NCBI GenBank assembly: GCA_977020255.1
Contig: CDROCS010002735.1
Coordinates: 248,001 to 312,000 of the forward strand
DNA from: Obrimoposthia wandeli
Taxonomy: Eukaryota
DNA: 64,000 bases
Reading direction: 5' to 3'
Notes under the pieces: model-generated
Seen by the model: the letters and a program-made list of their open reading frames with translations, nothing else
The model's database searches: none
What the model was told of the DNA's origin: nothing
Translations under genes and position numbers: made by a program
Shown here: positions 32,172 to 58,651 of the stretch, in pieces
Position numbering within the stretch: position 1 is the first letter of the stretch
Layout of the letters: each line of letters starts with the position of its first letter

Positions 32172-33206
32172 TTAGTTATTTGACCTACTAACGGGCGTTA
32201 GTAATGCCTGCGCCTTTTCTCCAAACTCATCTTTGTGTTGTGCAACTTTTTGTAAGATTTTTTCAGCTCGCTTGCACAGTTTTAACTGCCGTAAACAAAG
32301 CCCTCTATAGTAGTTAATTTTAGAACTACTTTGTCCTAACTCTATTAATGCCTCTAAATGATTTAAAGCGACGGCTCCCTCACCCACTGCTAGCAAAGTA
32401 ATAGCTAAATCTAAGCGGCAATCATAGTTATTCGTCTCAAGTGCCAATTGCTGTTCAAAGTGAAAAACGGCTTTATTAAGCTGATTTTTAGCTAAATAGA
32501 CAAGCGCTAAATGTTTATGTGCATTACTATCTTTTTCATCAAGAAATAATGCCCGTTGCAACGCGTGCTCTGCCCTGATGTTTTCTTTAATTAAGAATAA
32601 GCTGATACCTAGGTAAACCCATGCTTGATTGATCGCTGAGCATTCGAAAATGGCGCTTGAGCTAATTTTAATCGCTTTTTGATACAAGCTAATTGCCTGA
32701 ATGTGCAAGCCTTGTAAACTGAGAGAAACACCCTGTTTTACCAGTAAATCAATATTATTAGGGGTAAGTTCTAGTGCTGTAGCCCAAGCTTGTTGTGCCT
32801 CGGGTAAATTACCAGTTAGTTGTAACATGCTGGCGAAAGTATCCCAACCTTGTACGCTTTCGCTATTAAGAGCTAACGCTTTGGTTAAATGCTCAAACCC
32901 TAGTACTGTTTTATTGGTTAGCACTAACACTTGTCCTAAATTAGTATGCGCCATACTAAAATAAGGATCGTAATTAATAGCTAACGTTAAGTGCTCTAAC
33001 GCTTTATCCCACCGCTGCTGTTGAGCATAAATAAAACCTAAATTATTATGTGCCAATGCGTTATTCGCGGCTAACGCTAGTGCATTGTGATAAGCCTGTT
33101 CCGCTTTTAACAGATTATTGTTCACATGGTATTTGACACCTAGCGTTATGTAGTTGTTTATTTTATTGCTCGTGTTTAAGCTATTCATCGCCGCTCCTGT
33201 TTCCAT
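32172..33206 (-). CDS. Tetratricopeptide-repeat protein
   Basis: Tandem TPR consensus (ALAHNNLGFIY, AHTNLGQVL, AWVYLGISL, AHKHLALVY, YYRGLCL). Its ATG overlaps the TAA of the DUF4157 gene at 33206. Confidence 0.88.
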   Translation of the reverse strand: METGAAMNSLNTSNKINNYITLGVKYHVNNNLLKAEQAYHNALALAANNALAHNNLGFIYAQQQRWDKALEHLTLAINYDPYFSMAHTNLGQVLVLTNKTVLGFEHLTKALALNSESVQGWDTFASMLQLTGNLPEAQQAWATALELTPNNIDLLVKQGVSLSLQGLHIQAISLYQKAIKISSSAIFECSAINQAWVYLGISLFLIKENIRAEHALQRALFLDEKDSNAHKHLALVYLAKNQLNKAVFHFEQQLALETNNYDCRLDLAITLLAVGEGAVALNHLEALIELGQSSSKINYYRGLCLRQLKLCKRAEKILQKVAQHKDEFGEKAQALLTPVSRSNN

Positions 33207-36200
33207 TATGCTATCCTGGCAATCAATCCTTTCATTAGCTGATCTGTATTAATATCTGGCACTTCAAATTCAACATCACTTACAGAGACATTAAAAGGCT
33301 CTCCTTCGTGGTAATGCACTGGCAGCTTGATACCAAAGCGATAATCTGATCCAAAAGTATAAGCGGCAAATTCCCAACGATTATCGTAAACACTCATGCC
33401 CAGTGCCCGCACATCAACATAGCCACCGATATCAAATGTAAAACTAGGTTGAGCACTAACCGCCACACTCGCGGTTAAATCAAGACCAGTAGCTGGTGTC
33501 CAATTCACGTTAACAGCCGCTTCAGCCGCCCCCGCTATCCCTAATGTGCCACCTATGTCTAGGCCCCCAGTGACGCTTGCTCCAGGTATACCCAAGCCTA
33601 TTCCAGCACGTACTGATAAGCGCAAGCCTGCATCTGTCGGAATATTTAAATGTGCTTCGCCGGTGATCGTGGTTTCTTCTTCTCGTGCGGGGTTGTAAAC
33701 AATACCTAAACGTAATTGATCTATAACGCCTGGACCAATGCCTGCTTGTGCAGATAGCCCTCCGCCAATTTCAGCGACAACTCCCGGAAAAAGAGGGGCT
33801 TGTACCGCGATATTAAATATTGATTTATCCAGCTGGTTACGGGCAAAGATCTCTAGTTCACTCGGCAATCCAATTTCACCGGTTACAGTAACTTCGCCAT
33901 TTGGAGAAAATTCAACACCTGCTTTGCCCTGTAGCCACGGCGCTATTTGTAATGTTAGCTCACCGCCGCCATAAACAATTAAAGGGTTACCCGCCGCTGC
34001 TTTTTCACTTAGCGCTCCCTCTTCAGTGACCGATCTATTGGTTACCCCTACTTGAATAGCTCCAGATAGCATCCCTCGTTCATAATCTGCCGCCACTTGT
34101 GCTGTAAAAGTACCATCATCATAACTGACTAATAAGTTTGAATTTAGCCCTGGGATATCCGGCTCTGCTTCACCAGAGGCTGCTAGTTCAAAACCGCTAC
34201 CATCTGCTTTTTCTATTAATGAAGCTGATATTACACCTCCTTTAATACCGGGAGTTTGCGATGAAAGCTCAAAGGTACCTTTAATAGCAAAGCCTTCTTC
34301 CTCACTTTGGGTTATCTCTAATCTGCCGCTTTCAACACCTGGCAATGCTAGTTGTGCTTCTCCTATTGCACTAAAGCCGTCCGTTTCACTGTATTCAACA
34401 TTGACGATTGCACTGCGAATACCTTTTATTTTCCCCTCAATAATGCTTAGCGTTCCGCCCATACTCCATTGCTCATCGGCATAACCCACCCGCACTTGTG
34501 CACTATTACCCTCACCAAAAATACGCTCATCAAAGTCAAATTCTCCACTGAGTTGTATATCACTCGAATCGTCAAAACCTGCTTCCCCATCTGCGGCTAA
34601 ACTCCCACTACCCAAATTGTCAATACCAAAATTTAGCAAGCCACTCATGAATAACCCACTGTTATTCATTCCTATTAATAAAGAGCTACTCCCTATACTA
34701 AAAGGTGCTGGTATTTTTATGTCTGCGGTCGAAAATTCCTTATAAATACTGAGCTCTTCACCGCTGAGAGAAAAGTTAATCGAGCTGTCTTTTATCAAGG
34801 GTAAAGTAGGTGTTATCAACCCTGTTATCATTATACCTCCAGCATTGATATCCACTTCCTCTACGCTTAATGGACTTAAACCAGGATAATCATTAAGCGA
34901 ATTTTTAACTTGCTTCTTAAGTGAATTTATATCAAATTTCCCACCCCAACTGATACCATCCATTGGTACAATATCCACAGGCCCCAAATCAGCAGGATCT
35001 ATTTGAGAGGGTAACCTTTGTTTTAATGCTACGCTTGGCACTTTTAAACGAATACTTCCCTGTTTGGTTTGTGCATCAAAATCAACTGCTACAATATCAA
35101 AGTTTCTCCTCTCTTGACCTCTAATCGAAGCTGTACTTAATTGATAATTATCAGCTCCTTCAAGCTTATTCAAGGCATAGTAGTAACCGCCGCTAGCACT
35201 TGGAAATATATGTATATTCTCGGCGTCTCCTGCCATGAAGCCGCTAGCATCAATTTCAGCCTGAGACATAGGTTCAAGCCCTTCTAAATGGACACCCGCT
35301 TTAATATGATCGCGGCTGTAGTATTGCTGTTTTCCTTTCACTGCGCTATAGGAACCAAGCTTTCCTCTGATAGGGTCAAAATATACAATATACTCGGATC
35401 TAGCAGTATCTATATCCGCAGGTGGATTAGCTACTTTATCTTGTATATGACTGACAAAAGAGGCCACTTTAGTACGTATTTCAGTACGTATCTCCCTTCC
35501 TGATTGACCATTGATAGGTCCATCCAGTAACCACATGTTTTCAAGTTTGTCCTCGCCTCCTGTTTGGTGTTCAACTTGGTGATCGACTTGAAACGCCGCG
35601 GGGGTACCGTCTCCTCGCCAAACAGGCCTTCGACAACGCTCTTGAATAGTGCGCTGGGTACCAAACAAGTAACTTTTGGATCTTTTGTACTTCAAGTAAT
35701 AAATAAATTTTCCCGCTTGTTCCGTACATTGTGCTCCGGCTAACTTTTCAACAACTTTAGCGTCCGCTTGTTCTTTAACATCGCTTTCCCAGATGGGTAT
35801 TTGAGTGGTATTGCGCTTCCCCCCTCCTGTTGATGCATTACGTCGCCAAGTAAGTAACCCATCAACTTTAATGCTAAACTGCGCTGCGCTATAAAAACCA
35901 TGCTTGAAAGTAGGCACTTTCAGGCCTATTATTTTTAACTGCTTACTGATTGTATCGATTTCTCCATCATTGTTTGAATAGCTTGCAGGTTTTGCTATTT
36001 CTTCACGCATCACCTTGGTATGTATCGTTTGGTTATTTTGTTGCACCACATGCGTAAGTTCATGTATTAGTAATTTTTTACCAGCAACACTTAATGGTGC
36101 AAACTCCCCCGCATTGAAAAAAACATCATTGCCTAAGGTAAAGGCCCTAGCGTTTAGCGCCTGGCATAACAAGGCTGATTCACTATCTGTGTGGATACTC

Positions 36201-36727
36201 ACCCGGGAAAAATCGTAAGACATCTGAGTAGCTAATTCGTCAACTAAGTTGCTACTGAGCGCTAGTCCCAAACCTTTTTTGGCTGCTATTTTGTTGGCAA
36301 CGTCATCGTTAATTAAATTGCCATCATTGTTTGAAGCTATATCACTGGCTTGTTGAACTTCATTATTGACACTCGGCGCTCTTTTAGCTTGCAACGATTG
36401 CGCCTGATCGCGCAAATCTTCAGGGGCTAACGCGCTTCTTTGAGCGGTGTCTATAAGATCAATATTGGCAGCTGAAGGCATGGCTATTACTTCTTCTGCT
36501 ACTTGATCTGCTTGTGTTTCTAAAGGATCATTTGCCTGACCGAGTTGTAATTTTTTTTGCAAATAAGCCGGCTGCAGTGTGCTACGTGAGACAGCCCTTG
36601 CGTCATCTTTTTGCTTCGCTTGATTAGCGGGTTGCGCGCTTTTGCGCGTTTGACTCAATCGATTATTAGCCGTGGGCTTAACGAGCGCTTGTGGCGCCAT
36701 TTTTGGCTTCCTTGTCTGTGTTTGCAT
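33206..36727 (-). CDS. DUF4157 (eCIS core domain) protein with internal HNH-like nuclease motif; candidate cargo/effector
   Basis: LQLGQANDPLETQADQVA...DFSRVSIHTD...ARAFTLGNDVFF...HELTHVVQQ (DUF4157 with HExxH); FQVDHQVEHQTGGEDKLENMWLLDGPIN (HNH-like); long Gly-rich beta-type C-terminal half. Confidence 0.8.
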   Translation of the reverse strand: MQTQTRKPKMAPQALVKPTANNRLSQTRKSAQPANQAKQKDDARAVSRSTLQPAYLQKKLQLGQANDPLETQADQVAEEVIAMPSAANIDLIDTAQRSALAPEDLRDQAQSLQAKRAPSVNNEVQQASDIASNNDGNLINDDVANKIAAKKGLGLALSSNLVDELATQMSYDFSRVSIHTDSESALLCQALNARAFTLGNDVFFNAGEFAPLSVAGKKLLIHELTHVVQQNNQTIHTKVMREEIAKPASYSNNDGEIDTISKQLKIIGLKVPTFKHGFYSAAQFSIKVDGLLTWRRNASTGGGKRNTTQIPIWESDVKEQADAKVVEKLAGAQCTEQAGKFIYYLKYKRSKSYLFGTQRTIQERCRRPVWRGDGTPAAFQVDHQVEHQTGGEDKLENMWLLDGPINGQSGREIRTEIRTKVASFVSHIQDKVANPPADIDTARSEYIVYFDPIRGKLGSYSAVKGKQQYYSRDHIKAGVHLEGLEPMSQAEIDASGFMAGDAENIHIFPSASGGYYYALNKLEGADNYQLSTASIRGQERRNFDIVAVDFDAQTKQGSIRLKVPSVALKQRLPSQIDPADLGPVDIVPMDGISWGGKFDINSLKKQVKNSLNDYPGLSPLSVEEVDINAGGIMITGLITPTLPLIKDSSINFSLSGEELSIYKEFSTADIKIPAPFSIGSSSLLIGMNNSGLFMSGLLNFGIDNLGSGSLAADGEAGFDDSSDIQLSGEFDFDERIFGEGNSAQVRVGYADEQWSMGGTLSIIEGKIKGIRSAIVNVEYSETDGFSAIGEAQLALPGVESGRLEITQSEEEGFAIKGTFELSSQTPGIKGGVISASLIEKADGSGFELAASGEAEPDIPGLNSNLLVSYDDGTFTAQVAADYERGMLSGAIQVGVTNRSVTEEGALSEKAAAGNPLIVYGGGELTLQIAPWLQGKAGVEFSPNGEVTVTGEIGLPSELEIFARNQLDKSIFNIAVQAPLFPGVVAEIGGGLSAQAGIGPGVIDQLRLGIVYNPAREEETTITGEAHLNIPTDAGLRLSVRAGIGLGIPGASVTGGLDIGGTLGIAGAAEAAVNVNWTPATGLDLTASVAVSAQPSFTFDIGGYVDVRALGMSVYDNRWEFAAYTFGSDYRFGIKLPVHYHEGEPFNVSVSDVEFEVPDINTDQLMKGLIARIA

Positions 36728-36779: not shown

Positions 36780-38882
36780 TTAATCCTTAACCCTTTGCCT
36801 ATATTGCTGTAGCTGCGCAGGAATCGCTTTTCCGGCTTTAGAATACTCATCAATTAAGCAGCTTAGTAGCACTTCTTTATCGATGGTATCCCCCGTTACG
36901 CCTTGATCAATTGCTGCTGCATTTAAAACAGCATTGCGAATATAACCACCAGCAAGCTCTGAGTGATGACTTAAAAATTGACAGAATTCATCCTTAGGTG
37001 CACGTGTGCCTAGGTGTTTCAGCCAAAGATGATAGCGCTGCTTTGCCTCTGGAATAGGAAATTCAATGACGGCATCTAAACGACGCGTAAAGGCGCTATC
37101 TATTCTGGTGCGCGCATTAGACGTTAAAATAACAATACCCGGATGATTTTCGATGCGACTGAGTAAGTAGTTGGTCAACATATTTGCAAAACGATCACCA
37201 CTTGATTCCCCTTGCGTTCTTTTACCAAAAAGTGCATCCGCTTCGTCAAACAGTAAAATAGCATCACCTACTGCAGCTTGATCAAGTGCAAGGCTGAGGT
37301 TTTTCTCGGTTTCACCAATATATTTATTCATTACGCTGGCTAAATCTAAACGAAACAAAGGAGCCGTTAAGGCAGTGGCGAGATAACTTGCTGCAAGAGT
37401 TTTGCCCGTGCCACTTTGTCCGTAAAACAATACTTTAACGCCTTTACTTGCGGTAATCTTTGCAGTACTGCCCAAGCCTTGATGCACGCTTTCTCGGCTT
37501 AAACAGCGACTAATCAATCTTTGTAACTGTTGTGCTACTTTGCTGGGGACCACTAAAGCATTGCTGTCAATTTGCCATTCTACTTTATGCGCCAGCTGCG
37601 CCAGTTTATTACCGCACATTGAGTATCTAGCATAGAGAATATCTTCAAGGCTAATCTTGCGCTGGTAGCGTTGGGCGTTAATCGCTGCTTCTTGCACTAT
37701 GATTCGAATGGCGTTTGCGGATAACAAGGCACTGCGCGCTAAAAAAAGTGCATCTAATATGCTGCTTGAATGAACTGATAATTGCTGTTTCCATTGTGCA
37801 TGGCGCTGCATCAAAGGAGCAGCACCAAGATTTATTTCAATTATTTTAGGCGAATCTACCTTTCCCTCACTGCCTAATAAAATAACAATGGGAATAGCAA
37901 AATGCTGTGCTAGCTTGATCTGTTGAATGCTATAACTCTCACTCGATGCTAGCTGCAACTCAACAACCGGTAGGTAATTGAAGTAATGACACGCTAATAA
38001 TGGCGAATCACTTGAGCTGAAATATTGGCTATCAAAATAGCGTAACTTCCGTTTTAAATGCTGGGCTATAAATAAGCTGATATTGTGAGCATCATCAGTG
38101 TCACCCCGTAATATCAATACATTGATAGTGCCTTTTTGTAGCAGTGTCATGATATTTGCAAGCTGTGCACACAAGGCGTCACTAATTAAATCGGCTTGGC
38201 ATTTGTCCGTTAAACTCGGCCGGGTTTCATAAGCTTGTAACCATTTGTAATCATTAGCTTTTATGTCATTATTATGTTCTGGCTTTTGATTACGAGCACT
38301 GGCCTGATGAGAATGGAGTATGAGCAGTGGCCAAAACTCATCCGCCAAGCTATAACTTGTTGTTACTAATACGTCTTCACTTGATATTTTTAGTATTTTT
38401 GCTGTCACTAATCTATGCTGTACTAGATGAATAATTGTCGTTTGCTTGAGTTGATCTAGAAAAATTGTCGATATTATTTTCAGTAATAAATGTGCGCTTA
38501 CTCGCGTACTCCCTATAGGTTTTTGTAGCTCGCTTAATGCTAAATTGATAGAAAAATTGTATTCTGATTCAGCTGTGAGTGCTAATACAAAGAACTCCCA
38601 AAGTTTTAAATCAAAATCATCAATCATCTTTTGTAAAGCGGGTTCAATTTGCAATTGATTAAAACTGATAGATTGCAGTTCATGTACGCCCTGCTCTACG
38701 GTTAAGTCCTTTATGCAGTTGTTTATATAAAATGACTGCAACAACTCTGCAAATATTGGCTCTGGTTTTGTTAGGACACTTAGTCCAAAGATCCCAATGA
38801 TGCCTTGTACCCACTCATTTATAGCCAGTTTAGTCGTCGGTTTTTGCTGTAAAGTTAACAAAGTTTCTAGGTTTTTACGCAT
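36780..38882 (-). CDS. eCIS AAA+ ATPase (Afp15/Pvc15-like)
   Basis: Walker A GQSGTGKT, RLDLASVMNKYIGETEKNL, Walker B LLFDEADALFGKR, AFTRRL. The ATG at 38882 overlaps the upstream stop and has an AAGG RBS (track start 38924). Confidence 0.9.
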   Translation of the reverse strand: MRKNLETLLTLQQKPTTKLAINEWVQGIIGIFGLSVLTKPEPIFAELLQSFYINNCIKDLTVEQGVHELQSISFNQLQIEPALQKMIDDFDLKLWEFFVLALTAESEYNFSINLALSELQKPIGSTRVSAHLLLKIISTIFLDQLKQTTIIHLVQHRLVTAKILKISSEDVLVTTSYSLADEFWPLLILHSHQASARNQKPEHNNDIKANDYKWLQAYETRPSLTDKCQADLISDALCAQLANIMTLLQKGTINVLILRGDTDDAHNISLFIAQHLKRKLRYFDSQYFSSSDSPLLACHYFNYLPVVELQLASSESYSIQQIKLAQHFAIPIVILLGSEGKVDSPKIIEINLGAAPLMQRHAQWKQQLSVHSSSILDALFLARSALLSANAIRIIVQEAAINAQRYQRKISLEDILYARYSMCGNKLAQLAHKVEWQIDSNALVVPSKVAQQLQRLISRCLSRESVHQGLGSTAKITASKGVKVLFYGQSGTGKTLAASYLATALTAPLFRLDLASVMNKYIGETEKNLSLALDQAAVGDAILLFDEADALFGKRTQGESSGDRFANMLTNYLLSRIENHPGIVILTSNARTRIDSAFTRRLDAVIEFPIPEAKQRYHLWLKHLGTRAPKDEFCQFLSHHSELAGGYIRNAVLNAAAIDQGVTGDTIDKEVLLSCLIDEYSKAGKAIPAQLQQYRQRVKD

Positions 38883-40551
38883 TATTCTTACCTTTATAAG
38901 CATCATCCGCGAGCAAATGGTCATCGTCTATATAATGGAAATTAACCACCAACCCAAGCCACGGGAGCCAAGTAGGATTTATATCTAAGCCAGCTATTCG
39001 TATATTGATATCGATGGCTGAATGATGAAAATAAACATCTAAATAGCCAGTACTGGTTAATGCTTTGCCATAGATTTGCAGCGCGTTACCCAGTGTTGCT
39101 AAAGAAGTGTTGCAGGTTTTCGATAGTGTATTTAACCACAGTGGCTCTTGAGAGAAATGACTAACTGTCGCCAATTCTTCAACCTTTACCAACTGTAACT
39201 TGTTCGCCAAAAAAACCTGCAGTGCACTATCAAGGGGTAGCTTTATCCCTCGACTCAATCGGTATAAGATATGCCAAGGGTTTAGTTGCTGCTCAATAAT
39301 AATCGCTTGATATTCCTCTTGTTTAAGGATGTTAATTAAGAAATAAAAACCAGCACTTTGAGTATAAAACTGTACGTCTTCTGCTCGACTAGAAGTATCT
39401 AATTGAGTAGGTAAATAACTTTTATTTGCTAATTCATAATCTGTTGTAAAACCCTGTTCCTCATTTTTAGAAGCCCGCTTTGGCCTTTCTAGAAGTGGCT
39501 TATTATCTGATAGCTTTGGTAATGTATTTTCAGTTTTGATAGCAACCTTTGCGCTTAATTCATAAATAGCCTGTCCGTTTTTGACAGCTGAGTTATTTGT
39601 GCTCTGCATCACTTCTGTTGATGCTATATTGTGATCAGTATCCACAGCCTCAACGGTAGCATCAATCAAGTTGGGCAATTCTGCTTTGTCTTGGTTTTCA
39701 GCTGGCTTAGTTGTAATTCTAGGTATCGCATTATCCCTATAGAAATAATTAAATAGTTGCTCAAACCACCGGTGCTGGTGCTGTGTGTTTAGCATTATTT
39801 GTGGGTTGTATTGCCATGCGAGTAGGATGATAAGTAAATGGCACAGCTCGCCATTATGAGAGTCAGATAAATGTTTATCGGCGTTGTTATTGAGTAATTC
39901 TTGATAGCTTTTTAATTGTGCGATTGGAACAGAATTTACAGCATGATTATGGCTTAACTTTTTGTAACTAAAGTTTTTTGTAGTCAAACCATCTGTTGTA
40001 AATATTGACCACTGTGTCTGTGCGTATATCGCCTGTGTTAACTCTTTTAAATCATTACGACCTAAACAATTTAAAACTTCGTGCGCTAAATGTCGTGCCA
40101 CCAACGCTTGCAGCAACTTAGGTAATTGCAATATACTTTGCAGTAAGCAATGCTTTATGGCCTGTCGCTTATCTAAGTGCGCTATATTCCAGCTCTGCCA
40201 ATACCATGCTTTATGACCATTGAGTAAATCGGTAATCAAGGCGAGTTCAAGTTCAAAACTATTAGTGAAGTAAACCGCCGCTGCGCTCTGAGCTTGCACA
40301 GATAAACCGGATACAGCGCTTGCTTTTAATTGCATTGCTTGGCTGGTTATTTTCTCTGCTATCGTTTGCCTAGTATCAGCCACATCCAGCTTTTTTATAA
40401 TCACTATATTGGTGTTATCAAATTGCGCACAAAGCTGTGTTTCTATCGCTAACAGGATTTGCTGCTTAAAATCGATATCACCTATTAGCTGCATTTTATC
40501 GATGAGTACATCATCAGTAGCGTTTCGAGAGAAGTTTAATACACTGGTCAT
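38875..40551 (-). CDS. Probable eCIS tape-measure protein (Afp14-like)
   Basis: Position just before the ATPase; helical N-terminus, low-complexity middle, and C-terminus SAGFYFLINIL...IRIAGLDINPTWLPWLGLVVNFHY recalling the xAGLxLL...LPW end of Afp14-family proteins. Confidence 0.55.
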   Translation of the reverse strand: MTSVLNFSRNATDDVLIDKMQLIGDIDFKQQILLAIETQLCAQFDNTNIVIIKKLDVADTRQTIAEKITSQAMQLKASAVSGLSVQAQSAAAVYFTNSFELELALITDLLNGHKAWYWQSWNIAHLDKRQAIKHCLLQSILQLPKLLQALVARHLAHEVLNCLGRNDLKELTQAIYAQTQWSIFTTDGLTTKNFSYKKLSHNHAVNSVPIAQLKSYQELLNNNADKHLSDSHNGELCHLLIILLAWQYNPQIMLNTQHQHRWFEQLFNYFYRDNAIPRITTKPAENQDKAELPNLIDATVEAVDTDHNIASTEVMQSTNNSAVKNGQAIYELSAKVAIKTENTLPKLSDNKPLLERPKRASKNEEQGFTTDYELANKSYLPTQLDTSSRAEDVQFYTQSAGFYFLINILKQEEYQAIIIEQQLNPWHILYRLSRGIKLPLDSALQVFLANKLQLVKVEELATVSHFSQEPLWLNTLSKTCNTSLATLGNALQIYGKALTSTGYLDVYFHHSAIDINIRIAGLDINPTWLPWLGLVVNFHYIDDDHLLADDAYKGKNNA

Positions 40552-40585: not shown

Positions 40586-42517
40586 TCAGCGCCTTACACC
40601 AGGTATTGAAAATCCTGTGACACTGAACAGCCTGTTGGGTGTTTTTCGCGTTGCTTGTAAATGCGTAAGCATGACCACCGCGCCTTCATCATCAACATCT
40701 TCTACCCTTAAAGTACCCACCAACTGATCTTCATCATCCATCAACTGTAAGAGTGTACCTATTTGAGCTTCGCGGTTTAAGCTGACCCGTAAAAAGCTTC
40801 CAGGCTCTAACACCTTTGGAGCAGACAGCAAATTGCCGTGTAATATCTCATTAGGATCATCTGCCGCTGCAACGAGTAATGCGGCGCGTATCATATTTCT
40901 TAATGCGCTGTAACTGTGTGTGCTTGCGGTGGCTGATAGCTGTCTAAACCACCACTGCACCAGCGCGATAATAGTGCGCAACGTATTAAACTCATCTGGC
41001 TGCGCTTGCTCAAGTCCTGGCCACTGTTGTGGCTGATCAACGATTAACTGATCAAGTTCAGCGGCTGCCGCCCATTGCAAGCGTAGGGAAGGTGCTATTT
41101 CTCTTAATTGCGTTACTAGACAATGACAGGCTTGATCTAGTTTATTACGCAAGCTTTCTGCATTGCCTCGCAAACGATGGGGAGAGCCAGCCAATAGATC
41201 TTCTAAGGAAATTAATTTTGCGCTTTGCTGTTGATGCGCTAATAGCGATGTTTTGAACGCCGTCTTAAAGAGATCAGGGTCAAAATATGCTGAATTGACA
41301 GCCGCAGGGCTAGTATTCGCTACAGTATGCGTACTCATTTCAAACACACTAGGTGAGCCTTGGGCAATATCCATCAACAGCGCTTTATTGGCGTTAAAAA
41401 GCCCTTGCATGCGCACACTTAATAATGAATGTTCAATTTGAATGGCTTCTTGTAGTTTGTAATTTATGCGCTGTTGGCGGCTTTTAATTAAGCGTTGGAT
41501 ACGGCGTCTATCTGGCAATAATTTGGCATAACTGTGCAGCGCTTGCCAATCACTCATCGCAATATCTAACACGGATTCCATGAAAGGTTCTAGCTCAACG
41601 GGCAGATCTTTATCTTCTAAAGGACAACCTGGCACTAAATCATCAACGCTCGCATAATGTAGGGGCAACAAACTACTAGGCGACCGGTTAAGCGATGTTT
41701 CGCGCACTTTTACATAGCTTATGCCTAAATTGTTATCGAGGATCTGTGCGCGCTGGCGATAATCATTTTCAATTTTTTGCCAATTTTCGCTCACTAAATG
41801 ATTAACCACATGGTAATCGCTTAAACTCTTCAGGCGTTGACTATTTAAAGCACTCAACTGGTTTTGCCCTTCGATGATTTTGTTTTCAACGCTGGCAAGT
41901 TTGGATTGTAAATGCTTTAACCGCCGCTCTTTACTGGTTCTATACTTAACTAGGTTAGTGCGTAGTTTTTGAACGACCCTAATATCATCTTTGATAAAGA
42001 CGCCCGTTTTAAACAGTGCTTCATGGCTATCTTCAGCGGCTGCATTTAAAGCGCCAATATTGGCCAAGCCTTCTAATCTAAAAGTGTTGGGGGTTGTGAA
42101 ATACTCCCCAAAATATTGATTTAACTCACTAGGCTCTTGATAAACATCTTGGTATAAGCTTTCTACATAACTTTTGGTTTTTGCCAGTAAACTTTCATCT
42201 ATATCTACTAACTCAGCTTGCAGTGTTTGGATACCCAATTTAGCTTTTTCAAATAAACTATGTGTCGTATCTACATAATCTAATACTCCAAAACCACCTT
42301 CACCTTTGGCAAACGCGGGCTCATTAATTTTTTCAGCAACCGGAGTATGACGATTTATTTGCGATAACTGATCCTTCAAGTTTAGTTGCTGGCTAAGCTG
42401 CAAATCTTTTAGCAATTCTTGCTGCGCTTTTTCTTTAAGCACCAAATCCTGGTGTCGTAACTGGCTTTGTGCAAAGCTACTTGCTTTTGAAACTTCACTT
42501 TGAAAAAACTTAGCCAT
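40586..42517 (-). CDS. Hypothetical eCIS-associated coiled-coil protein (643 aa)
   Basis: Long ORF co-oriented in the locus with an AAGGA RBS; heptad-rich segments; no recognised family. Confidence 0.7.
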   Translation of the reverse strand: MAKFFQSEVSKASSFAQSQLRHQDLVLKEKAQQELLKDLQLSQQLNLKDQLSQINRHTPVAEKINEPAFAKGEGGFGVLDYVDTTHSLFEKAKLGIQTLQAELVDIDESLLAKTKSYVESLYQDVYQEPSELNQYFGEYFTTPNTFRLEGLANIGALNAAAEDSHEALFKTGVFIKDDIRVVQKLRTNLVKYRTSKERRLKHLQSKLASVENKIIEGQNQLSALNSQRLKSLSDYHVVNHLVSENWQKIENDYRQRAQILDNNLGISYVKVRETSLNRSPSSLLPLHYASVDDLVPGCPLEDKDLPVELEPFMESVLDIAMSDWQALHSYAKLLPDRRRIQRLIKSRQQRINYKLQEAIQIEHSLLSVRMQGLFNANKALLMDIAQGSPSVFEMSTHTVANTSPAAVNSAYFDPDLFKTAFKTSLLAHQQQSAKLISLEDLLAGSPHRLRGNAESLRNKLDQACHCLVTQLREIAPSLRLQWAAAAELDQLIVDQPQQWPGLEQAQPDEFNTLRTIIALVQWWFRQLSATASTHSYSALRNMIRAALLVAAADDPNEILHGNLLSAPKVLEPGSFLRVSLNREAQIGTLLQLMDDEDQLVGTLRVEDVDDEGAVVMLTHLQATRKTPNRLFSVTGFSIPGVRR

Positions 42518-44708: not shown

Positions 44709-47225
44709 CTAAACAGTCATAAGACCCATATCTAAATCGCGCCATTGATTACGTAGTTTTGTGGTCAATTTGAACTCAGTGGTCGCGGCAATCGCCAACC
44801 CTAATTTACGAGTGCTTTTATGTGCTTGTAATAAATACTCATGAAATTTTTGTGTACTTTCATCCTTCAGGATGATGACCATAGTTGACCAAAGCGCTTC
44901 ATCATAGAATACTGGTATTATCGTGGCCATTTGGTTAACCCATAAGCGCAGCTGCGTGTTTGCACCGACTAAATCGCTTACTTGTTTTATAATCCTTTGA
45001 TTACTAAAATCTCTGGCTTTGGCACGCTGTATTACCGTTAAGCTTTCTACATTAGACAGATTTATATTAGACAGATCAGTGGCGCTACTTGCTCGGGTAA
45101 TCGCACTTGGACTTTGCGCCGCTGCTTCCCATTGTCTCCTCAACGAACTACTAAGATCAAAATGACTCGCTTTAGAAGCTATATAGGCAGCAGTATTCAT
45201 TTTAAGCCCTGATTTGATATACTCCTCTACAAAGCTTTGTAGTAATTCACTATGGGCAAGTTCTAATAGCGTTCTCCATACTACATCTTGATATTCTCTT
45301 TCAACTATCAGCAATAACTGGTTGATAAATATGAGAAGATCAGGCATTTCATTTACTAATTCTTGTAACTGACTCGCTGTTCTCTGCGTATTTTCATTTT
45401 CCGCACCTCTAATTCTCACTAGCTGTTCAATGCTAAATAGGCCACCACTGTTATTGCTCAGCTGCGCCTCAAGTGCTTGATTCTCTGTCCGTAGTCGATT
45501 TAGTTGCATAGTGAGCCGATTAGTTAAGTCCCCAGCACTGCTCAATTGTTGTTGCAATCTACTTTGCTCAGTCAAAAGCGTTTCATTATTGGTTTCTAAT
45601 TGCCTAATACTTTGTAGTGCATTTTGCAATTGAATGCTGGTTGGTGAATCATTGCCATCGCTGCCACTCTCGATTTGCTGCAGTAAATTGGTATTTAATA
45701 TTTGTAAGCGGCTATTATCTTCAAGCGCCTGGTTCAGATCAGCGACCAACTGCGAAAAGTCAGCAGGGATCGCATTACTAGGATTCGCTTGCAGGTACCC
45801 TGCGGCTAATACCACCGCACTGACTTGTGTTTCAGCCACTCGGGTTGGGCGGCGCACATACATAACATTGCGCGCTTGAGCCCAAATATCGCGCCAAACA
45901 ATTTGATGAGAGTTGCTAATACTTACAAAAGAATTATTGACAGGCCTTACAACAGCTTCGAAATTACTACCAAAGCTAGTACTTGCATACAACTGCAGTG
46001 CTAGTTCAGGGATGTAGCGCATCTCATCAGTTCTTACTTCATCACTATCATGCTCTAACTGGCGAGCACGATATGCGAACTGATGATCAGACATCGCCAC
46101 CAGCACCATAATATCAACCCCTTTATCTCGTGTGAGATCTATAGGAGCTAACAGTTTACTTTGAGCGATAATAGCGGCTAAATCTGTTTCTCTTACGGGT
46201 GCAATGCTGACATCAAAACTTTGTGGAAAGTAGTTTTGCGAGGTAGTTAATGGATTTATAGCGGCTTTCGGCACGCTGCCATAAGGGGGCAATAAATTAA
46301 AATAATGATGTGCGCTAAAAGAAAAGTCGCGGCTACTTTGCTGTCGAAAATCGAGCACACTAACTAATAATTCTTCATAATGAGTATGCAAATCTTCTTG
46401 TAAACCCGTTTGGCTGTTGGCTTTTCTTAAAGGGCGCTTTAGTAAGCCTTTATCTAGCCAACTGACGCGGCCGTGTTCGATACTAATTATACCTAGCGCT
46501 ACTGCTTCATCTGATATTTCATGTGGTTGGCTGGTATTGCCATTAGTAGTGCTGCCAATTAATTCTGCCACTAAAGCTGCTCGCGTATTTAGATCGCTAG
46601 GTTTTCTATCAATTGCAACGCTATTATCAGCGCTGGCGGTAAAGGTCTTACTGCGCAGTGGCTGTAGTATTATTTCAACTCCTTCACTGTAAGCATTGAA
46701 ATGAAACCCGCGCTGCGCGGCTAAATCTCGCGGGTAAATTTCACTGCTGCCACTGCCTTGCTCAGCATATTGTAAACAAACAGCGTAAAGGCCGCGTGTG
46801 AAGCGTCTAAAATTGTTATTTAAAGCCGCGAGCTGCGCACTGTCATATAAGTTAATTTCTAATTCTGGCGCGTTGCTTGTCTTCTCCATTGCATCTGTAC
46901 TATCACTTGATGAGGTTTTTAACTCTAAGACTCTGCCCGCTGGTGATACAGCTAAACCATTGGTGATGATTAGCTTGCCGTCTTCACTGAGCATTACATC
47001 TAAGCCGCGAACGACACCATAGCCGAGCACTCGCCCAACTTCGCGCAGCCGCTCATCAAGATAGAGCTGATCTCGAATTAAATCTGCCGCTTTGAGTAAT
47101 CTGCCGTCATAATAATTGGTGCGCGACAGTTTGGGATCAATACTGGCTGCACCGGAATATAGTGGCGCTTGTTGATTTGCATTGAGTGATGAATTGACGG
47201 GTGAAAACTCTGAGTTATTTGACAT
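44709..47225 (-). CDS. eCIS fibre/baseplate-attachment-type protein 2 with coiled coil
   Basis: RTNYYDGRLLKAADLIRDQLY...GYGVVRGLDV...ITNGLAVSPAGRVL, the motif typical of Afp13-like N-termini; long heptad stretch. The ATG at 47225 has a GAGGA RBS (track start 47252). Confidence 0.65.
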   Translation of the reverse strand: MSNNSEFSPVNSSLNANQQAPLYSGAASIDPKLSRTNYYDGRLLKAADLIRDQLYLDERLREVGRVLGYGVVRGLDVMLSEDGKLIITNGLAVSPAGRVLELKTSSSDSTDAMEKTSNAPELEINLYDSAQLAALNNNFRRFTRGLYAVCLQYAEQGSGSSEIYPRDLAAQRGFHFNAYSEGVEIILQPLRSKTFTASADNSVAIDRKPSDLNTRAALVAELIGSTTNGNTSQPHEISDEAVALGIISIEHGRVSWLDKGLLKRPLRKANSQTGLQEDLHTHYEELLVSVLDFRQQSSRDFSFSAHHYFNLLPPYGSVPKAAINPLTTSQNYFPQSFDVSIAPVRETDLAAIIAQSKLLAPIDLTRDKGVDIMVLVAMSDHQFAYRARQLEHDSDEVRTDEMRYIPELALQLYASTSFGSNFEAVVRPVNNSFVSISNSHQIVWRDIWAQARNVMYVRRPTRVAETQVSAVVLAAGYLQANPSNAIPADFSQLVADLNQALEDNSRLQILNTNLLQQIESGSDGNDSPTSIQLQNALQSIRQLETNNETLLTEQSRLQQQLSSAGDLTNRLTMQLNRLRTENQALEAQLSNNSGGLFSIEQLVRIRGAENENTQRTASQLQELVNEMPDLLIFINQLLLIVEREYQDVVWRTLLELAHSELLQSFVEEYIKSGLKMNTAAYIASKASHFDLSSSLRRQWEAAAQSPSAITRASSATDLSNINLSNVESLTVIQRAKARDFSNQRIIKQVSDLVGANTQLRLWVNQMATIIPVFYDEALWSTMVIILKDESTQKFHEYLLQAHKSTRKLGLAIAATTEFKLTTKLRNQWRDLDMGLMTV

Positions 47226-47227
47226 AT

Positions 47228-48181
47228 CTAAGATTCCTCTTGGCTCAACCAAGTCAGTGCATCCGCGCTATTTACAAAAGGCCTGACTAAATTATTCAAA
47301 GCGATGTGATGCGGGTTTATCACAGGACTAATCATTGGTAACTGATCGGTGCGAATCGCAATCTCGATATGCGCCAATAAAGTTTTGGCTATTTCAGCTG
47401 AATTGCCTTTAACAGCCAGTGCTTGTGGATCTGCTGCTAAGGCATAAACTAACCCGCTGTGATGCTGCGCACGCTTTTTAGCAACTCCTGTTAGCTGAGC
47501 TAAATAATCCGTTTCAGTGTCGTTGAGTAGCTCTGTTATTGGGATTTTTTGTTGCTGATGTGCATTCCAAGACCAAGGGATTTGCTCGGTATTTAATAGC
47601 GCAGCATTAATTTCTAGCAACACCCCTTCGGTAGTGCGACTTGGCGAAATAGGATCGGTACCTGCGTTTACTTTTCTGGCGAGTATCGGTTGTAAACCAC
47701 TAGGGCAGTCACGTTGTCGCATAGTGATGAGTAGGCTTAGGCTATCTTGTGCGTCATTTAGTCCGTTTAATAACGCGGCTTTACCTTGCTCATCAGCTAC
47801 TTGCGATGCCAGCCATTGGTTTAAATTGATGCAATAAGGCTCAAAGCTGTTCACCTCACGCCCTAATCCATCAATACCGACCCCGGGAGTAACTAGCAAT
47901 TTAACCGTCACATCATCGACACTAGGTTCCACGCCTTCGTGCTCTAACTGCACAGCAAACCCGAGCACTGTGCCGGCGCCATGTAGCCAATAATCGTGCC
48001 TATTTAAGCGACGCCGATGATAGCCTTGCTCAGCATTCGTGGCCTCGACACCGAGTAACATTCCCGGTACAAAATTAACTCTTTGTAAAGGGCTTTGAAA
48101 ATCGCTATCTTGCGCTAAGATTTCTTGAGATACACCGTTTGGGGTTAAAAGATGCGCTTTATCGAAATTATTCATGCTCAC
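47228..48181 (-). CDS. eCIS fibre/baseplate-attachment-type protein 1
   Basis: RVNFVPGMLLGVEATNAEQGYHRRRL...HGAGTVLGFAV...VTPGVGIDGLGREV. Confidence 0.65.
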   Translation of the reverse strand: MSMNNFDKAHLLTPNGVSQEILAQDSDFQSPLQRVNFVPGMLLGVEATNAEQGYHRRRLNRHDYWLHGAGTVLGFAVQLEHEGVEPSVDDVTVKLLVTPGVGIDGLGREVNSFEPYCINLNQWLASQVADEQGKAALLNGLNDAQDSLSLLITMRQRDCPSGLQPILARKVNAGTDPISPSRTTEGVLLEINAALLNTEQIPWSWNAHQQQKIPITELLNDTETDYLAQLTGVAKKRAQHHSGLVYALAADPQALAVKGNSAEIAKTLLAHIEIAIRTDQLPMISPVINPHHIALNNLVRPFVNSADALTWLSQEES

Positions 48182-53605: not shown

Positions 53606-55396
53606 TTAAGGACAATTACGTACTTTTTGGATAGCCCAAGGGATCCAACGCATAAATATATTGAGTAATTTCATAATAATCATCAATAAAATCATGGCGC
53701 AAATAGTGATCACTGGAATGCTAAAACTAATGCTAAAACCTAAACAGGCACTAAAACGATTCCCTTTATTGCTCTCTTTAAATTCTAAATCAGGGGACAC
53801 CCTTTCAACCGCATCCGCTAAGGATTTGGGCGTCATAAAAGTAACGCCTTTTGCGACACCTCTTTTTAAATCGCTCAATTCTGGTAGCTGTATAACACTT
53901 GGGCGCACCGCTTCAGGGTCCATAGGGTTGACTACCCTAAATCTTTTACTTGCAGGGCCCCAAGCGATTTTCTCTTTTTGGCAGTGATCTAAATAGCGTA
54001 CAAAAGGCTTTACGAAATACACCGCATCCTGTTCTTGAGAGAACTTAGCTATTGGTAGTGCGTCCGCTAAAATTTTAGCCGCTTGTTGCGATCTAATTAC
54101 TAATAGTTGGCGCAGTGAACCCGCTTGCGACTCTGTTATATACAAAGCACTATCATTACTATTATCAGTGCTAACATTAGGTAAATATTCAACGTTTAGA
54201 CCCTGCTCACCACTGACTATACTGGCATCTTTTTCGTGTTGATCTAACAGTGCGAACCAAGCGATGAGGTCACTGTAGTTATTTTCAAGATAGCTTAGTA
54301 AACTTTGCTGCCTCGCTGTTTTTGTTAAGTTATCATGTTGATCAATCGTTATTTGCTGATAAAAATAAAACTGCGCAATTTGACCACGTAATGCTTCGTT
54401 CGCAGAGTTAGTCGCATCATAGAGGTGGAAGCTTTCTACGAAGGTGCGCAATAAACTAATAAAGGCACTGTTTGCCTGATGATTTTGACACACTAAACCA
54501 GTGTCGACATGCCATACAAAAAGCTGACAAGGATGATCGACTAAATCATTAAAAGTACCAGTACAATCGCAAGATGGACCACTACTTTGACCATCCCAGC
54601 TACCAAATGGCCATTGGTGATTGGCTAGCATTCCGCTAGCAGCTGTTCTGTTATTGCGCGTATTGTTTTTTTTGGTAAGTTCGCTACCCACTTCTGCTTG
54701 TGTATTACCTCCTTCGTTCTCTAAAGGGTCACGCTGTTTAAAAATGCTTTGTACCGCACTGCCAATCCCTTTTCTAAACACTTGGCTAGCAGAAGGTGCT
54801 TGCAATGATAAATCAACACTACCCCCTAGAGGCAAATAACCAGACAGTAAGCAGCGCTTTTTTCCTTTAGTGTTGTCGACGGTAATAAGCTGTGCATGCA
54901 GAGGATGCGTTTTTTCACCACTGTATAAAGGCTCTACCGCTTTGGCTTCGATTAATTTATTATTTAGCAACCTTTTATATTGATCAGGTTCTTCAATATT
55001 ACTGGTTTGCGCTACCCAACCATTTGCCGCTCCCTCGTGTATTTGCCAGCTTTGGTAATTATCTTCTGTGCCTTTTCTAATCACCATTCCAGCCGATAGC
55101 ACTTTGGTTGGATCAAAAGCTGCTTGGCCTATTACATCACACTGAATTTCAGCACAAACCATATAAAATGTGCGATGAATGGGCAGTCGTAAATTCACAA
55201 AATCTTGAGCTTTAGCGCCAAATCTATCCTCCTTGCGCCAATCTTGGGCGTGAGTTCCCGTTAGCTGACCGGCGATCACCTGTTGCTGAAAACGACTAAC
55301 AAACTCTTCATCAAGGTAGCGATGCAGCATTGTGCCATCGTGCTCCCCTGCATAGAAAGGACTTTTAATAACTGCTTTATGCTGTTTATTTACCAT
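53606..55396 (-). CDS. Hypothetical eCIS protein (596 aa) with hydrophobic C-terminal helix, in the usual PAAR position
   Basis: The ATG at 55396 overlaps the gp5-like stop (ATGGTAA; track start 55459). N-terminal LRLPIHRTFYMVCAE; C-terminal FSISFSIPVITICAMILLMIIMKLLNIFMRWIPW. Confidence 0.7.
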   Translation of the reverse strand: MVNKQHKAVIKSPFYAGEHDGTMLHRYLDEEFVSRFQQQVIAGQLTGTHAQDWRKEDRFGAKAQDFVNLRLPIHRTFYMVCAEIQCDVIGQAAFDPTKVLSAGMVIRKGTEDNYQSWQIHEGAANGWVAQTSNIEEPDQYKRLLNNKLIEAKAVEPLYSGEKTHPLHAQLITVDNTKGKKRCLLSGYLPLGGSVDLSLQAPSASQVFRKGIGSAVQSIFKQRDPLENEGGNTQAEVGSELTKKNNTRNNRTAASGMLANHQWPFGSWDGQSSGPSCDCTGTFNDLVDHPCQLFVWHVDTGLVCQNHQANSAFISLLRTFVESFHLYDATNSANEALRGQIAQFYFYQQITIDQHDNLTKTARQQSLLSYLENNYSDLIAWFALLDQHEKDASIVSGEQGLNVEYLPNVSTDNSNDSALYITESQAGSLRQLLVIRSQQAAKILADALPIAKFSQEQDAVYFVKPFVRYLDHCQKEKIAWGPASKRFRVVNPMDPEAVRPSVIQLPELSDLKRGVAKGVTFMTPKSLADAVERVSPDLEFKESNKGNRFSACLGFSISFSIPVITICAMILLMIIMKLLNIFMRWIPWAIQKVRNCP

Positions 55397-56031
55397 ATAT
55401 TTCCAGCTCCTGGCGTATAAGATGAACTCACTACTGAATTGGTAATTAAGGTGTCGCATTTAACGACACCTGAAAAATCACTCATAGCCGCATTGACTTT
55501 TACCATGCTCGCGTTGACCTCAACGGTGCTCGCAGCTTCTATTTCAACTTTCGCTGTACTACTAATTTTTATACCGCTAGTCGATAGCATTATCCTCTCG
55601 TTATCTTTTTCAATAGTGATTTCACCTGCACCGTGTTCATCAATTTCTATTCGATATCCACTGCTCGTTTGTAAGGTAATTTTAGGGCTTTGTGCATCAT
55701 CTAAGATAACCTTTGAACCGCCGGGCGTAATCAACGCATATTTATCTTCCACTTCTTGTGCATCACCTGCATGGCTATCGCTGCCGCTCCACAAAGCGCC
55801 TAACACCACCGCTATTTCAGGTGATATAAATGAAATAACTACTTGCTCATCAACTTTTGGTAAAAAGCTAATTCCATACCCTGCGCCTGCAGAATTTGTC
55901 ATACACGCTGCCCACAATGTCATGCCTGTGCTGTGTAACATCACTTGAATGCGCCCACGCCTCTCGGGGTCTTGATTATTGGAGACTATCCCTAAATGCA
56001 ACGCTTGCATTGCGCCCAATTGTTGACTCAT
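55390..56031 (-). CDS. gp5/gpV-like spike protein (OB fold plus short beta region; C-terminal part of a split VgrG/Afp8)
   Basis: GIVSNNQDPERRGRIQV...WAACM...AGAGYGISFLPKVDEQVVISF...VVLGALWS; ends VVKCDTLITNSVVSSSYTPGAGNIW. Confidence 0.88.
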   Translation of the reverse strand: MSQQLGAMQALHLGIVSNNQDPERRGRIQVMLHSTGMTLWAACMTNSAGAGYGISFLPKVDEQVVISFISPEIAVVLGALWSGSDSHAGDAQEVEDKYALITPGGSKVILDDAQSPKITLQTSSGYRIEIDEHGAGEITIEKDNERIMLSTSGIKISSTAKVEIEAASTVEVNASMVKVNAAMSDFSGVVKCDTLITNSVVSSSYTPGAGNIW

Positions 56032-58168: not shown

Positions 58169-58651
58169 CTATGGCTTGCGCCGTGTTAGTTGTAAGCCTT
58201 CATGTACCAAATGCAATTCTTCAATTGCTACGGCACTCGCATTGGCAGATAAATCTGCGCTCTTAAATTTAACTGCCATGGCATTTTCTATATGCCAGCT
58301 TAAAATGGGTTTTACACTACTGGTTGTGTTACTAAAATTGTGGTCAAAAACTTCTATCAATCCTTGCATGCGATAAGCGTAATTAGCTTGACGAGTGCTG
58401 ATATCTATCCATGCATATAAATCATCAATTTCTGTGATGCCGCGCTTGAGTACCAAGGTTGGGAAGGTTGTTTTGCCTACAAGTTGTACATCTCCCCAGT
58501 TACGTCCACCCTCTTTGATAGTTTTCGCCGACATTGAGATTTCCAGCCCGCTAATATCACTAAAAGCGCCCTGCGCAACCAGCGCTTTAGCTGCATCATC
58601 GGTAACATTAAATAAGCTAACTTTGAATCTAAAGGGAATAAATTCAGACAT
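58169..58651 (-). CDS. Tail tube protein 2 (gp19-like, Afp5-like)
   Basis: GAFSDISGLEISM...IKEGGRN...LVLKRGI...VKFKSADLSANASAVAIEELHLVHEGL. Confidence 0.9.
   Translation of the reverse strand: MSEFIPFRFKVSLFNVTDDAAKALVAQGAFSDISGLEISMSAKTIKEGGRNWGDVQLVGKTTFPTLVLKRGITEIDDLYAWIDISTRQANYAYRMQGLIEVFDHNFSNTTSSVKPILSWHIENAMAVKFKSADLSANASAVAIEELHLVHEGLQLTRRKP

Follow-up and report, generated by a model that had tools for sequence, protein, structure and literature searches.

The 64,000-nucleotide stretch of contig CDROCS010002735.1 analysed here (NCBI GenBank assembly GCA_977020255.1; positions 248,001 to 312,000 of the forward strand; henceforth the window), assigned to Obrimoposthia wandeli, includes an operon for an extracellular contractile injection system (eCIS), and the large gene near the end of this operon raises the question of whether its product is a cargo that the system delivers and, if so, what that cargo does. 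The gene (positions 33206–36727 of the window, on the minus strand, as are all window features below unless stated otherwise; stop codon 33206–33208) was found in the list of open reading frames (ORFs) and their translations as an uninterrupted ORF of 1,173 amino acids (aa), and it encodes a protein with DUF4157, an HNH-like module and a beta domain. The original prediction, made from the sequence alone, took the product for a modular effector with a nuclease toxin in its middle. This was found to be the best-supported reading, and the protein is probably a multi-module effector of the adjacent eCIS with an internal toxin, a cargo status that we infer. However, the middle module proved to be a fixed part of the protein, and its C-terminal beta domain and the tetratricopeptide repeat (TPR) protein encoded by the next gene turned out to be central to the picture.

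The middle module (residues 240–530; 35138–36010) is a conserved segment of ~290 aa that, taken whole, has no solved structural counterpart. Within it, an HNH-like beta-beta-alpha core (residues 368–427; 35447–35626) was delimited by predicted secondary structure, conservation and weak HNH matches. The DH...N...N motif of 28 residues, which had been reported at nucleotides (nt) ~35510–35593, corresponds to residues 379–406 and exactly to nt 35510–35593, and its key residues are near-invariant in 297 proteins that carry the core. His383 and Asn397 are present in all 297, Asn406 in 296 and Asp382 in 291, the remaining six having Glu, and Glu386 and Gln388 are present in 290 each. This conservation is far beyond chance. 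The core as a whole shows 43 % mean pairwise identity and no gaps.

An AlphaFold model of residues 235–600 (pLDDT 92, pTM 0.86) includes a strand (379–383) that ends in Asp382-His383, a second strand (398–402) preceded by Asn397, and a helix (403–427) with Asn406 in its first turn. A strand-strand-helix unit with Asp-His, Asn and Asn so placed is the canonical beta-beta-alpha-metal arrangement. The general-base His at the end of strand 1, preceded by Asp, is represented by Asp382-His383, and the structural Asn at strand 2 and the metal-ligand position on the helix (His or Asn) by Asn397 and Asn406, both of which align to Asn residues of the Cas9 HNH domain. The beta-beta-alpha topology is that of the secondary structure of the model.

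HNH proteins were also the recurrent theme of the database comparisons. When a profile of the family was compared with the sequences in the PDB, the sole match that was not of low complexity was a Cas9 HNH domain (7enh_A; E = 0.66), with D-H, N and N in register and His-to-Asn spacings of 14 and 23. PF01844 was the only Pfam family besides DUF4157 to recur, matching at E ≤ 1 in 14 of 37 members and a further 9 of 40 more distant ones (23 of 77 in total; best E = 0.0021), and GmrSD_C and HNH_5 were found as single matches. Four of the five PHROGs matches of the middle module are functionally annotated, all as HNH endonuclease families (best E = 0.0046), and for four other members the annotated matches were likewise all HNH endonucleases, always over the identical residues. 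Among the top 50 structural neighbours in BFVD, 15 of the 32 that are named are explicitly HNH and two more are 'homing' or 'putative' endonucleases, the HNH alignments being short (59–76 columns; root-mean-square deviation (rmsd) 3.8–5.4 Å) and all at E ≥ 0.04. The best match in a tblastn search of phage genomes (E = 0.02) lies at the extreme C-terminus of an annotated polymorphic toxin whose gene precedes an annotated immunity gene, and the other matches included one annotated HNH endonuclease gene.

Several of these results weigh against an HNH nuclease and hence against a nuclease effector. No test of the HNH assignment is significant when taken singly, with Pfam scores below threshold and the PDB profile and BFVD matches at the E-values given above. 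The window protein itself reaches only 11.8 bits with PF01844, for which the gathering cut-off is 21.4, and its core is without the zinc-finger cysteines of many HNH domains. A Foldseek search of the PDB with the 366-residue middle model, a check proposed in the original prediction, retrieved noise with no HNH domain (best E = 0.23). This null is uninformative rather than negative because the HNH core makes up only ~50 of the 366 residues. There were no matches when PDB sequences were searched with the whole protein using phmmer.

However, six independent lines (conservation, the model, the PDB profile, Pfam, PHROGs and BFVD) converge on an HNH-type core, and the predicted nuclease core thus stands as regards its invariant residues, their register in the model and the family that recurs in the searches, though not as regards significance in any one test. 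Residues 379–427 very probably form a genuine HNH-type fold, and it is somewhat less likely that the core is an active nuclease. It represents a distinct subfamily, having no zinc cysteines and, in Pro368, Trp370, Glu386 and Gln388, extra strongly conserved positions.

The genetic context agrees with the eCIS locus that had been predicted. Pfam and NCBIfam scans revealed a complete minus-strand eCIS operon in which the 1,173-aa gene is the penultimate gene and the last large one. The gene directly upstream, separated from it by 52 nt, encodes the AAA+ ATPase of the eCIS (36780–38924; Afp15/Pvc15/Alg15 class; Pfam AAA, E = 1.3e-24), which is presumed to be the cargo loader. Homologues of the ATPase are encoded directly upstream of the large family gene in loci L002, L003, L004 and L083 and nearby in L084. 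All of the homologue loci examined were eCIS loci, the window and 10 other family loci having this context.

A search with the whole protein identified ~37 full-length relatives at 29–80 % identity, from sources including Oceanospirillaceae, Mariprofundaceae and Edaphobacter. With the middle module alone as query, an exhaustive phmmer search yielded at least 282 clusters (50 % level), almost all of them of 1,100–1,400-aa proteins with the module at a constant relative position. At least 340 clusters (90 % level) were recovered with the C-terminal domain, and the best 120 share 48–86 % identity over the full 558 residues. Where these proteins are named, their annotations are 'DUF4157 / eCIS core domain-containing', 'hypothetical' or 'of unknown function'. 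Named sources of proteins with the beta domain include Cellvibrio, Halomonas, Methylomonas, Thioalkalivibrio, Marinobacterium, Thalassolituus and Desulfobacterales, and the named members span marine and freshwater Gammaproteobacteria, Zeta-, Alpha- and Betaproteobacteria, Desulfobacterales, Acidobacteriota and Actinomycetota. A scan of genome contigs that relied on the generic HExxH pattern was less specific, as 73 of its 79 loci encoded DUF4157-only proteins, and a profile search with distant members was dominated by generic DUF4157 candidates.

Architectures were scored with region-specific profiles built from the family. In the main family the order is fixed: a leader, DUF4157, the ~290-aa middle module and a beta domain of ~560 aa. 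When 100 new proteins were picked for their beta domain, 96 had DUF4157, the middle module and the beta domain together, and the other four are N-terminally truncated with the middle module kept. All three parts were likewise found in 123 of 148 proteins selected by the middle module, most of the others resembling contig-end fragments. As 100 of 100 beta-domain-selected proteins carry the middle module, it is a constant part and not a swapped cassette, so the swapping that the original prediction suggested looking for among homologues was not borne out in the main family.

Modularity was found in rare relatives in the wider family. In the 1,208-aa protein P0273, which carries no HNH module, DUF4157 and the beta domain (E = 4e-30) are followed by a bona fide Endonuclea_NS_2 domain (46.6 bits; cut-off 27) and by HhH motifs. 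The product of L006 (8117–12535, plus strand; from a Deltaproteobacteria metagenome-assembled genome (MAG)) and P0272 (1,261 aa) also combine DUF4157 and the beta domain without HNH, and end in ~330–490 unannotated residues. Conversely, the same HNH core is located at the C-terminus of P0078, P0120 and P0106 (E = 1e-16, 8e-14 and 6e-6), which are DUF4157 proteins of 758–993 residues without the beta domain. P0106 is encoded in an eCIS locus, next to small ORFs and with no TPR gene. The occurrence of the HNH core at C-terminal tips and its replacement in P0273 indicate that it behaves as a toxin-type module, and the retention of the beta domain across this nuclease exchange suggests a separable carrier that has repeatedly been paired with nucleases. 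L034 encodes a Psychroserpens DUF4157 protein whose end also matches the HNH core, but too weakly (E = 6e-4) to be used.

Very long tandem fusions were also observed (P0130, P0134, P0146 and P0148, of 2,380–2,639 aa, and P0154, P0185, P0223, P0251, P0165, P0171 and P0235), some with two complete DUF4157-HNH-beta units and others with one unit and an extra DUF4157 unit. As each tandem unit opens with its own DUF4157, the arrangement fits polyprotein-like processing, although gene calling may have produced the fusions. In P0172 it is the beta domain that is duplicated. Downstream of the gene for the DUF4157 protein with an HNH tip in L085 (5001–7478, plus strand) come three small ORFs, of 34, 77 and 91 aa, that may be immunity genes, and beyond these a gene for a second DUF4157 protein with a weak TGL match. 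In L003, from the Cellvibrio sp. UBA8526 MAG, the family gene has one break, which may reflect a pseudogene or an assembly error, and is read as two ORFs.

The N-terminal region of the window protein resembles that of known eCIS cargo. The leader (residues 1–55; 36563–36727), a candidate loading sequence, is basic, of low complexity and poorly conserved, with 18 % mean pairwise identity and 36 % gaps among homologues; residues 1–60 carry a net charge of +11 and include no Gly or Glu. These values agree with the basic, low-complexity N-terminal ~55 aa of the original prediction, as does the Pfam match to DUF4157 / eCIS_core (PF13699; E = 1.7e-24) at residues 157–233 (36029–36259) with the HELTH motif that had been read there. 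This HExxH sequence occupies residues 222–226 (nt 36050–36064), and its His222, Glu223 and His226 are invariant in 37 sequences; the DUF4157 region has 51 % mean pairwise identity in the family. Upstream of it, a conserved acidic segment (residues 56–90; 36458–36562; 41 % mean identity) includes Asp67, Glu70, Ala73 and Ala77, each at least 90 % conserved. This segment recurs in unrelated DUF4157 proteins, for which tblastn matches start close to residue 56, and, given the variable linker between it and the Pfam domain, the conserved DUF4157 unit may be bipartite. DUF4157 is a recognised marker of eCIS that is often fused N-terminally to toxins (PMC8213781; PMC11297309), and the order of eCIS cargo, in which a disorder-type N-terminus precedes DUF4157, appears from the basic, gap-rich leader to be present here.

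The C-terminal beta domain (residues 616–1173; 33209–34882) is Gly-rich, acidic and all-beta, and is the most conserved part of the protein. The ~600 aa of Gly-rich beta-type sequence originally described here were recovered at residues 601–1173, which are 13.4 % Gly, have a net charge of −44 and are all-beta in the AlphaFold prediction. The model of the domain (pLDDT 88.5, pTM 0.62) has ~32 antiparallel strands, of which three span 28 residues, and a short final helix. The strands are amphipathic, with Kyte-Doolittle means of +2.2 and −1.0 for the two faces. Mean pairwise identity reaches 57 % in the last ~270 residues (901–1173), and between the window and L003 the beta domain is 57 % identical, compared with 35 % for the AAA+ ATPase. 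The beta domain is the slowest-evolving part of the protein.

The only significant neighbours of the beta domain in a Foldseek search of the PDB were large membrane barrels, namely LptD, SlpA, VDAC, Tom40 and porins (E from 1e-5 to 1e-2, probability up to 1.00). However, TM-scores of 0.15–0.28 and an rmsd of >20 Å indicate the likeness of one beta-meander to another and not a common fold. No transmembrane helix, signal peptide or hydrophobic N-terminus was found in the 1,173-aa protein (maximum 19-residue hydropathy 1.45). The domain has neither a C-terminal aromatic beta-signal, as it ends in a helix, nor a closed barrel that can be superposed, and the absence of a signal peptide and of a beta-signal ruled out an outer-membrane protein of the producer. 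We hypothesise that the domain may be a device for membrane insertion or translocation.

Between the middle module and the beta domain lies a variable linker (residues 531–615; 34883–35137; 24 % mean identity) that is AT-rich, with a G+C fraction (GC) of 0.376 overall and of 0.235 at third codon positions (GC3). It is this patch, downstream of the HNH motif, and not the middle module that is visibly AT-richer, which corrects the original prediction. GC is 0.429 in the module, 0.471 in the HNH core and 0.435 in the gene as a whole, so composition gives no sign of a foreign origin for the module. A foreign AT-richer cassette was ruled out by the GC and GC3 of each module together with the fixed architecture.

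The gene downstream of the large gene (32172–33206) encodes a 344-aa protein with Pfam matches to TPR, and its start overlaps the stop of the large gene by one base (TAATG). The protein has no signal peptide and is described as cytoplasmic. Homologues of ~320–360 aa are encoded directly downstream of the beta-domain gene in L001, L002, L003, L005, L006, L080, L082, L083 and L084. The TPR gene thus adjoins beta-domain genes with the HNH module (the window, L001–L003, L005, L080 and L082–L084) and without it (L006), and in L084 it is kept beside the beta-domain gene despite an altered operon order. At the same position, P0272 is followed by an overlapping gene for a 329-aa unannotated protein. 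The partner is missing next to the beta-less P0106 (the HNH-at-C-terminus protein of L085) and also from the family locus of Oceanicella (L081). It is therefore the beta domain, and not the HNH module, that the TPR partner tracks, as it does in 10 of 11 loci. Among NCBIfam models, LcrH_SycD (E = 1.8e-13) and SctY (E = 6.6e-8) match the partner, and scores far below the cut-offs (50 against 105 bits) are explained by generic TPR similarity. We infer that it is a chaperone or adaptor of the beta domain.

These observations suggest how an effector of this design would work. The basic, disordered N-terminal ~55–150 residues would serve as the loading sequence for the adjacent AAA+ ATPase, by which the protein would be threaded into the tube lumen, by analogy with the cargo proteins Cgo1 and Cgo2 of AlgoCIS, the eCIS of Algoriphagus machipongonensis. 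The HNH-type site of the middle module (Asp382, His383, Asn397 and Asn406) would be the enzymatic payload, most likely a DNase. The C-terminal amphipathic beta-meander of ~560 residues would act as a conserved carrier or delivery module that relatives with a different nuclease retain, and in the producer it may be handled by the co-translated cytoplasmic TPR protein as chaperone or adaptor. DUF4157 with its invariant HExxH would mark the start of each cargo unit and, more speculatively, may process the protein.

Several further observations weigh against an effector of this kind. The conservation is unusual for a toxin family, as shown by the slower evolution of the beta domain relative to the ATPase in the window and L003. 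No recognisable small immunity gene was found at the locus, where the downstream gene is that of the conserved TPR protein. The classical pattern of a polymorphic toxin is thus absent, since the candidate toxin is internal and invariant in position and has no cognate immunity gene. The large DUF4157 proteins from the Bacteroidota loci examined carry neither the HNH module nor the beta domain. In AlgoCIS, DUF4157 is dispensable for loading and the toxicity of Cgo1 does not depend on HExxH motifs (PMC8894135; bioRxiv 10.64898/2026.05.27.728243). To these is added the poor superposition of the beta domain on its structural neighbours, and the comparison with Cgo2 (1,228 aa, against 1,173 aa for the window protein) is one of gross layout.

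Part of this evidence would suit a conserved accessory factor that is not injected but works in or on the producing cell, for example during maturation or release of the particles or to degrade the producer's DNA at lysis, with the TPR protein as its assembly partner. Conservation exceeds that of usual effectors, as the beta domain has diverged less than the AAA+ ATPase and the fibre-region genes of the same loci; the gene occurs in one copy, and its architecture and synteny are constant across Pseudomonadota, Acidobacteriota and Actinomycetota; an immunity gene is lacking; and Pfam now calls DUF4157 the 'eCIS core domain'. However, a disordered basic leader with DUF4157 is the layout of proven cargo (PMC8894135; bioRxiv 10.64898/2026.05.27.728243), and relatives exchange their nuclease modules or bear HNH as a C-terminal tip, as polymorphic toxins do. 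In addition, the TPR partner is lacking in L081 and the position in the operon varies in L084, unlike that of fixed structural genes. A role confined to the producer is unlikely.

Alternatively, the harmful part could be the beta domain itself, as a barrel that inserts into membranes and forms a pore, with the HNH-like module secondary or serving another role. The ~32 strongly amphipathic strands, some of 28 residues, would suit such a barrel, as would structural neighbours that are all large membrane barrels where significant, the highest conservation in the protein, the persistence of the domain without the HNH module (L006, P0272 and P0273) and a partner resembling, below the model cut-offs, the translocator chaperones of type III secretion. 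However, folds with TM-scores and rmsd of this order are not superposable, the pTM is only 0.62 and the net charge is −44. Moreover, the HNH residues would not have remained invariant over 297 proteins if the module were dispensable, and the pairing of the beta domain with another nuclease in P0273 suggests that the barrel-like part serves the nuclease. A pore-forming toxin is improbable.

The barrel-like and nuclease parts could also be combined in a self-delivering nuclease. The chain would be ejected unfolded, the beta domain would refold into a very large barrel in the membrane of the target cell and pass the HNH module across, DUF4157 would free the unit, and the TPR protein would keep the barrel part soluble in the producer. 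This would amount to an autotransporter-like layout used in the target instead of the producer and, if true, would make the tandem fusions polyproteins processed by their own DUF4157 domains, but such a device is a rather remote prospect. It is also improbable that the HNH-like motif persists as a structural or binding relic, with a beta-beta-alpha finger that has no metal and binds nucleic acid or protein. Such a relic would suit the facts that all database matches are sub-threshold, that there is no Cys4 zinc site and that the core is embedded in a ~290-residue module otherwise of no recognised fold. However, an HNH domain that has become inactive normally loses its general-base His or its metal ligands, whereas here the His and both Asn residues are retained in at least 296 of 297 proteins and Asp is replaced only conservatively by Glu.

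A multi-module nuclease effector, as the preferred reading, can be set beside known systems. Among cargo of the DUF4157 type, physical presence in particles is known only for the AlgoCIS proteins Cgo1 and Cgo2, which fill the lumen of the tube (PMC8894135) and depend on a disordered N-terminal region for their loading (bioRxiv 10.64898/2026.05.27.728243). Cgo2 (ALPR1_12690) and Cgo1 resemble the window protein in being encoded at the end of the eCIS operon near the AAA+ ATPase and in having a disordered N-terminus, DUF4157 and a large ordered C-terminal part. However, the published accounts ascribe no function to the C-terminal domain of Cgo2 and mention no TPR partner (PMC8894135; bioRxiv 10.64898/2026.05.27.728243). 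No Algoriphagus entry was among the matches of the whole-protein, genome tblastn, distant-member profile and C-terminal-domain searches.

The known DUF4157-toxin fusions (Geller et al. 2021, PMC8213781; Danov et al. 2024, PMC11297309) likewise have DUF4157 N-terminal to an enzymatic module in an eCIS locus, and nuclease partners are known among them, as in the Endonuclea_NS_2 fusions found here (P0058, P0061, P0091 and P0273). In those proteins the toxin is C-terminal and variable and usually has an immunity gene, whereas the candidate toxin of the window protein has a fixed, internal place ahead of a more conserved beta domain of ~560 residues, and the TPR gene stands in the place of the immunity gene. 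With the HNH/His-Me finger nucleases (Cas9 7enh_A, phage HNH proteins and polymorphic-toxin tips), the core shares Asp-His on strand 1, Asn at strand 2 and Asn on the helix, but it differs in its sub-threshold matches, its missing zinc cysteines, the family-specific Glu386, Gln388, Pro368 and Trp370, and the larger novel module around it.

The beta domain shares with LptD, Deinococcus SlpA and VDAC/Tom40 a meander of long amphipathic antiparallel strands and, by layout, resembles autotransporters in having a C-terminal meander behind an N-terminal 'passenger'. It differs from membrane barrels in the lack of a signal peptide, beta-signal, superposition or sequence relationship and in its helical end. 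The TPR partner is like the class II TPR chaperones of type III secretion (LcrH/SycD and SctY) in being a small, cytoplasmic, all-TPR protein that is translationally coupled to its presumed client, but at 344 aa it is about twice as long, the LcrH_SycD model having 136 positions. The literature searched revealed neither biochemical work on any family member nor a link of DUF4157 proteins to an internal HNH module, to such a beta domain or to a TPR partner, and a very widespread family of probable effectors with all three has probably gone undescribed so far.

The rest of the eCIS operon (38875–62913) encodes the sheath, two gp19-type tubes, CIS_tube, the gpD hub, the base_V spike, gp25, Baseplate_J, Tail_P2_I and a protein with a weak CIS13-like match, and includes several unannotated genes (Pfam and NCBIfam scans). 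Beyond the TPR gene, a convergent rhodanese gene closes the locus. The Pfam scan gave no match for the large operon genes at 38875–40551, 40586–42517, 44709–47252, 47228–48181 and 58644–60170. As listed, the base_V spike ORF (213 aa; 55390–56031, minus strand) and the next, unannotated ORF (617 aa; 53606–55459, minus strand) overlap by ~70 nt.

Other arrangements were observed in related loci. On a 581-kb Joint Genome Institute (JGI) metagenome contig (L084), the eCIS order differs from that in the window, with the sheath, tube, Pvc16_N cap, AAA+ ATPase, a 339-aa DUF4157 protein and a CxxCxxCC protein preceding the large family gene and the TPR partner, and the baseplate genes following. The CxxCxxCC gene is also found upstream of P0272. 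In the distant family loci L080 and L083, the pair formed by the large gene and the TPR gene is flanked by glycosyltransferase genes, which in L080 are upstream and in L083 downstream.

Few eCIS have an identified natural payload, and DUF4157 proteins usually go no further than the label 'domain of unknown function'. The family described here now has a concrete anatomy, comprising a leader, DUF4157, a near-invariant HNH-type site, a beta domain and a dedicated TPR partner. If the interpretation as a nuclease effector is correct, many environmental eCIS would deliver a nuclease, and the field would gain two things that the literature searched does not mention, a conserved 'carrier' domain and a candidate chaperone for cargo. 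Should Cgo2 also belong to the family, this would provide the first functional annotation for that experimentally proven cargo protein.

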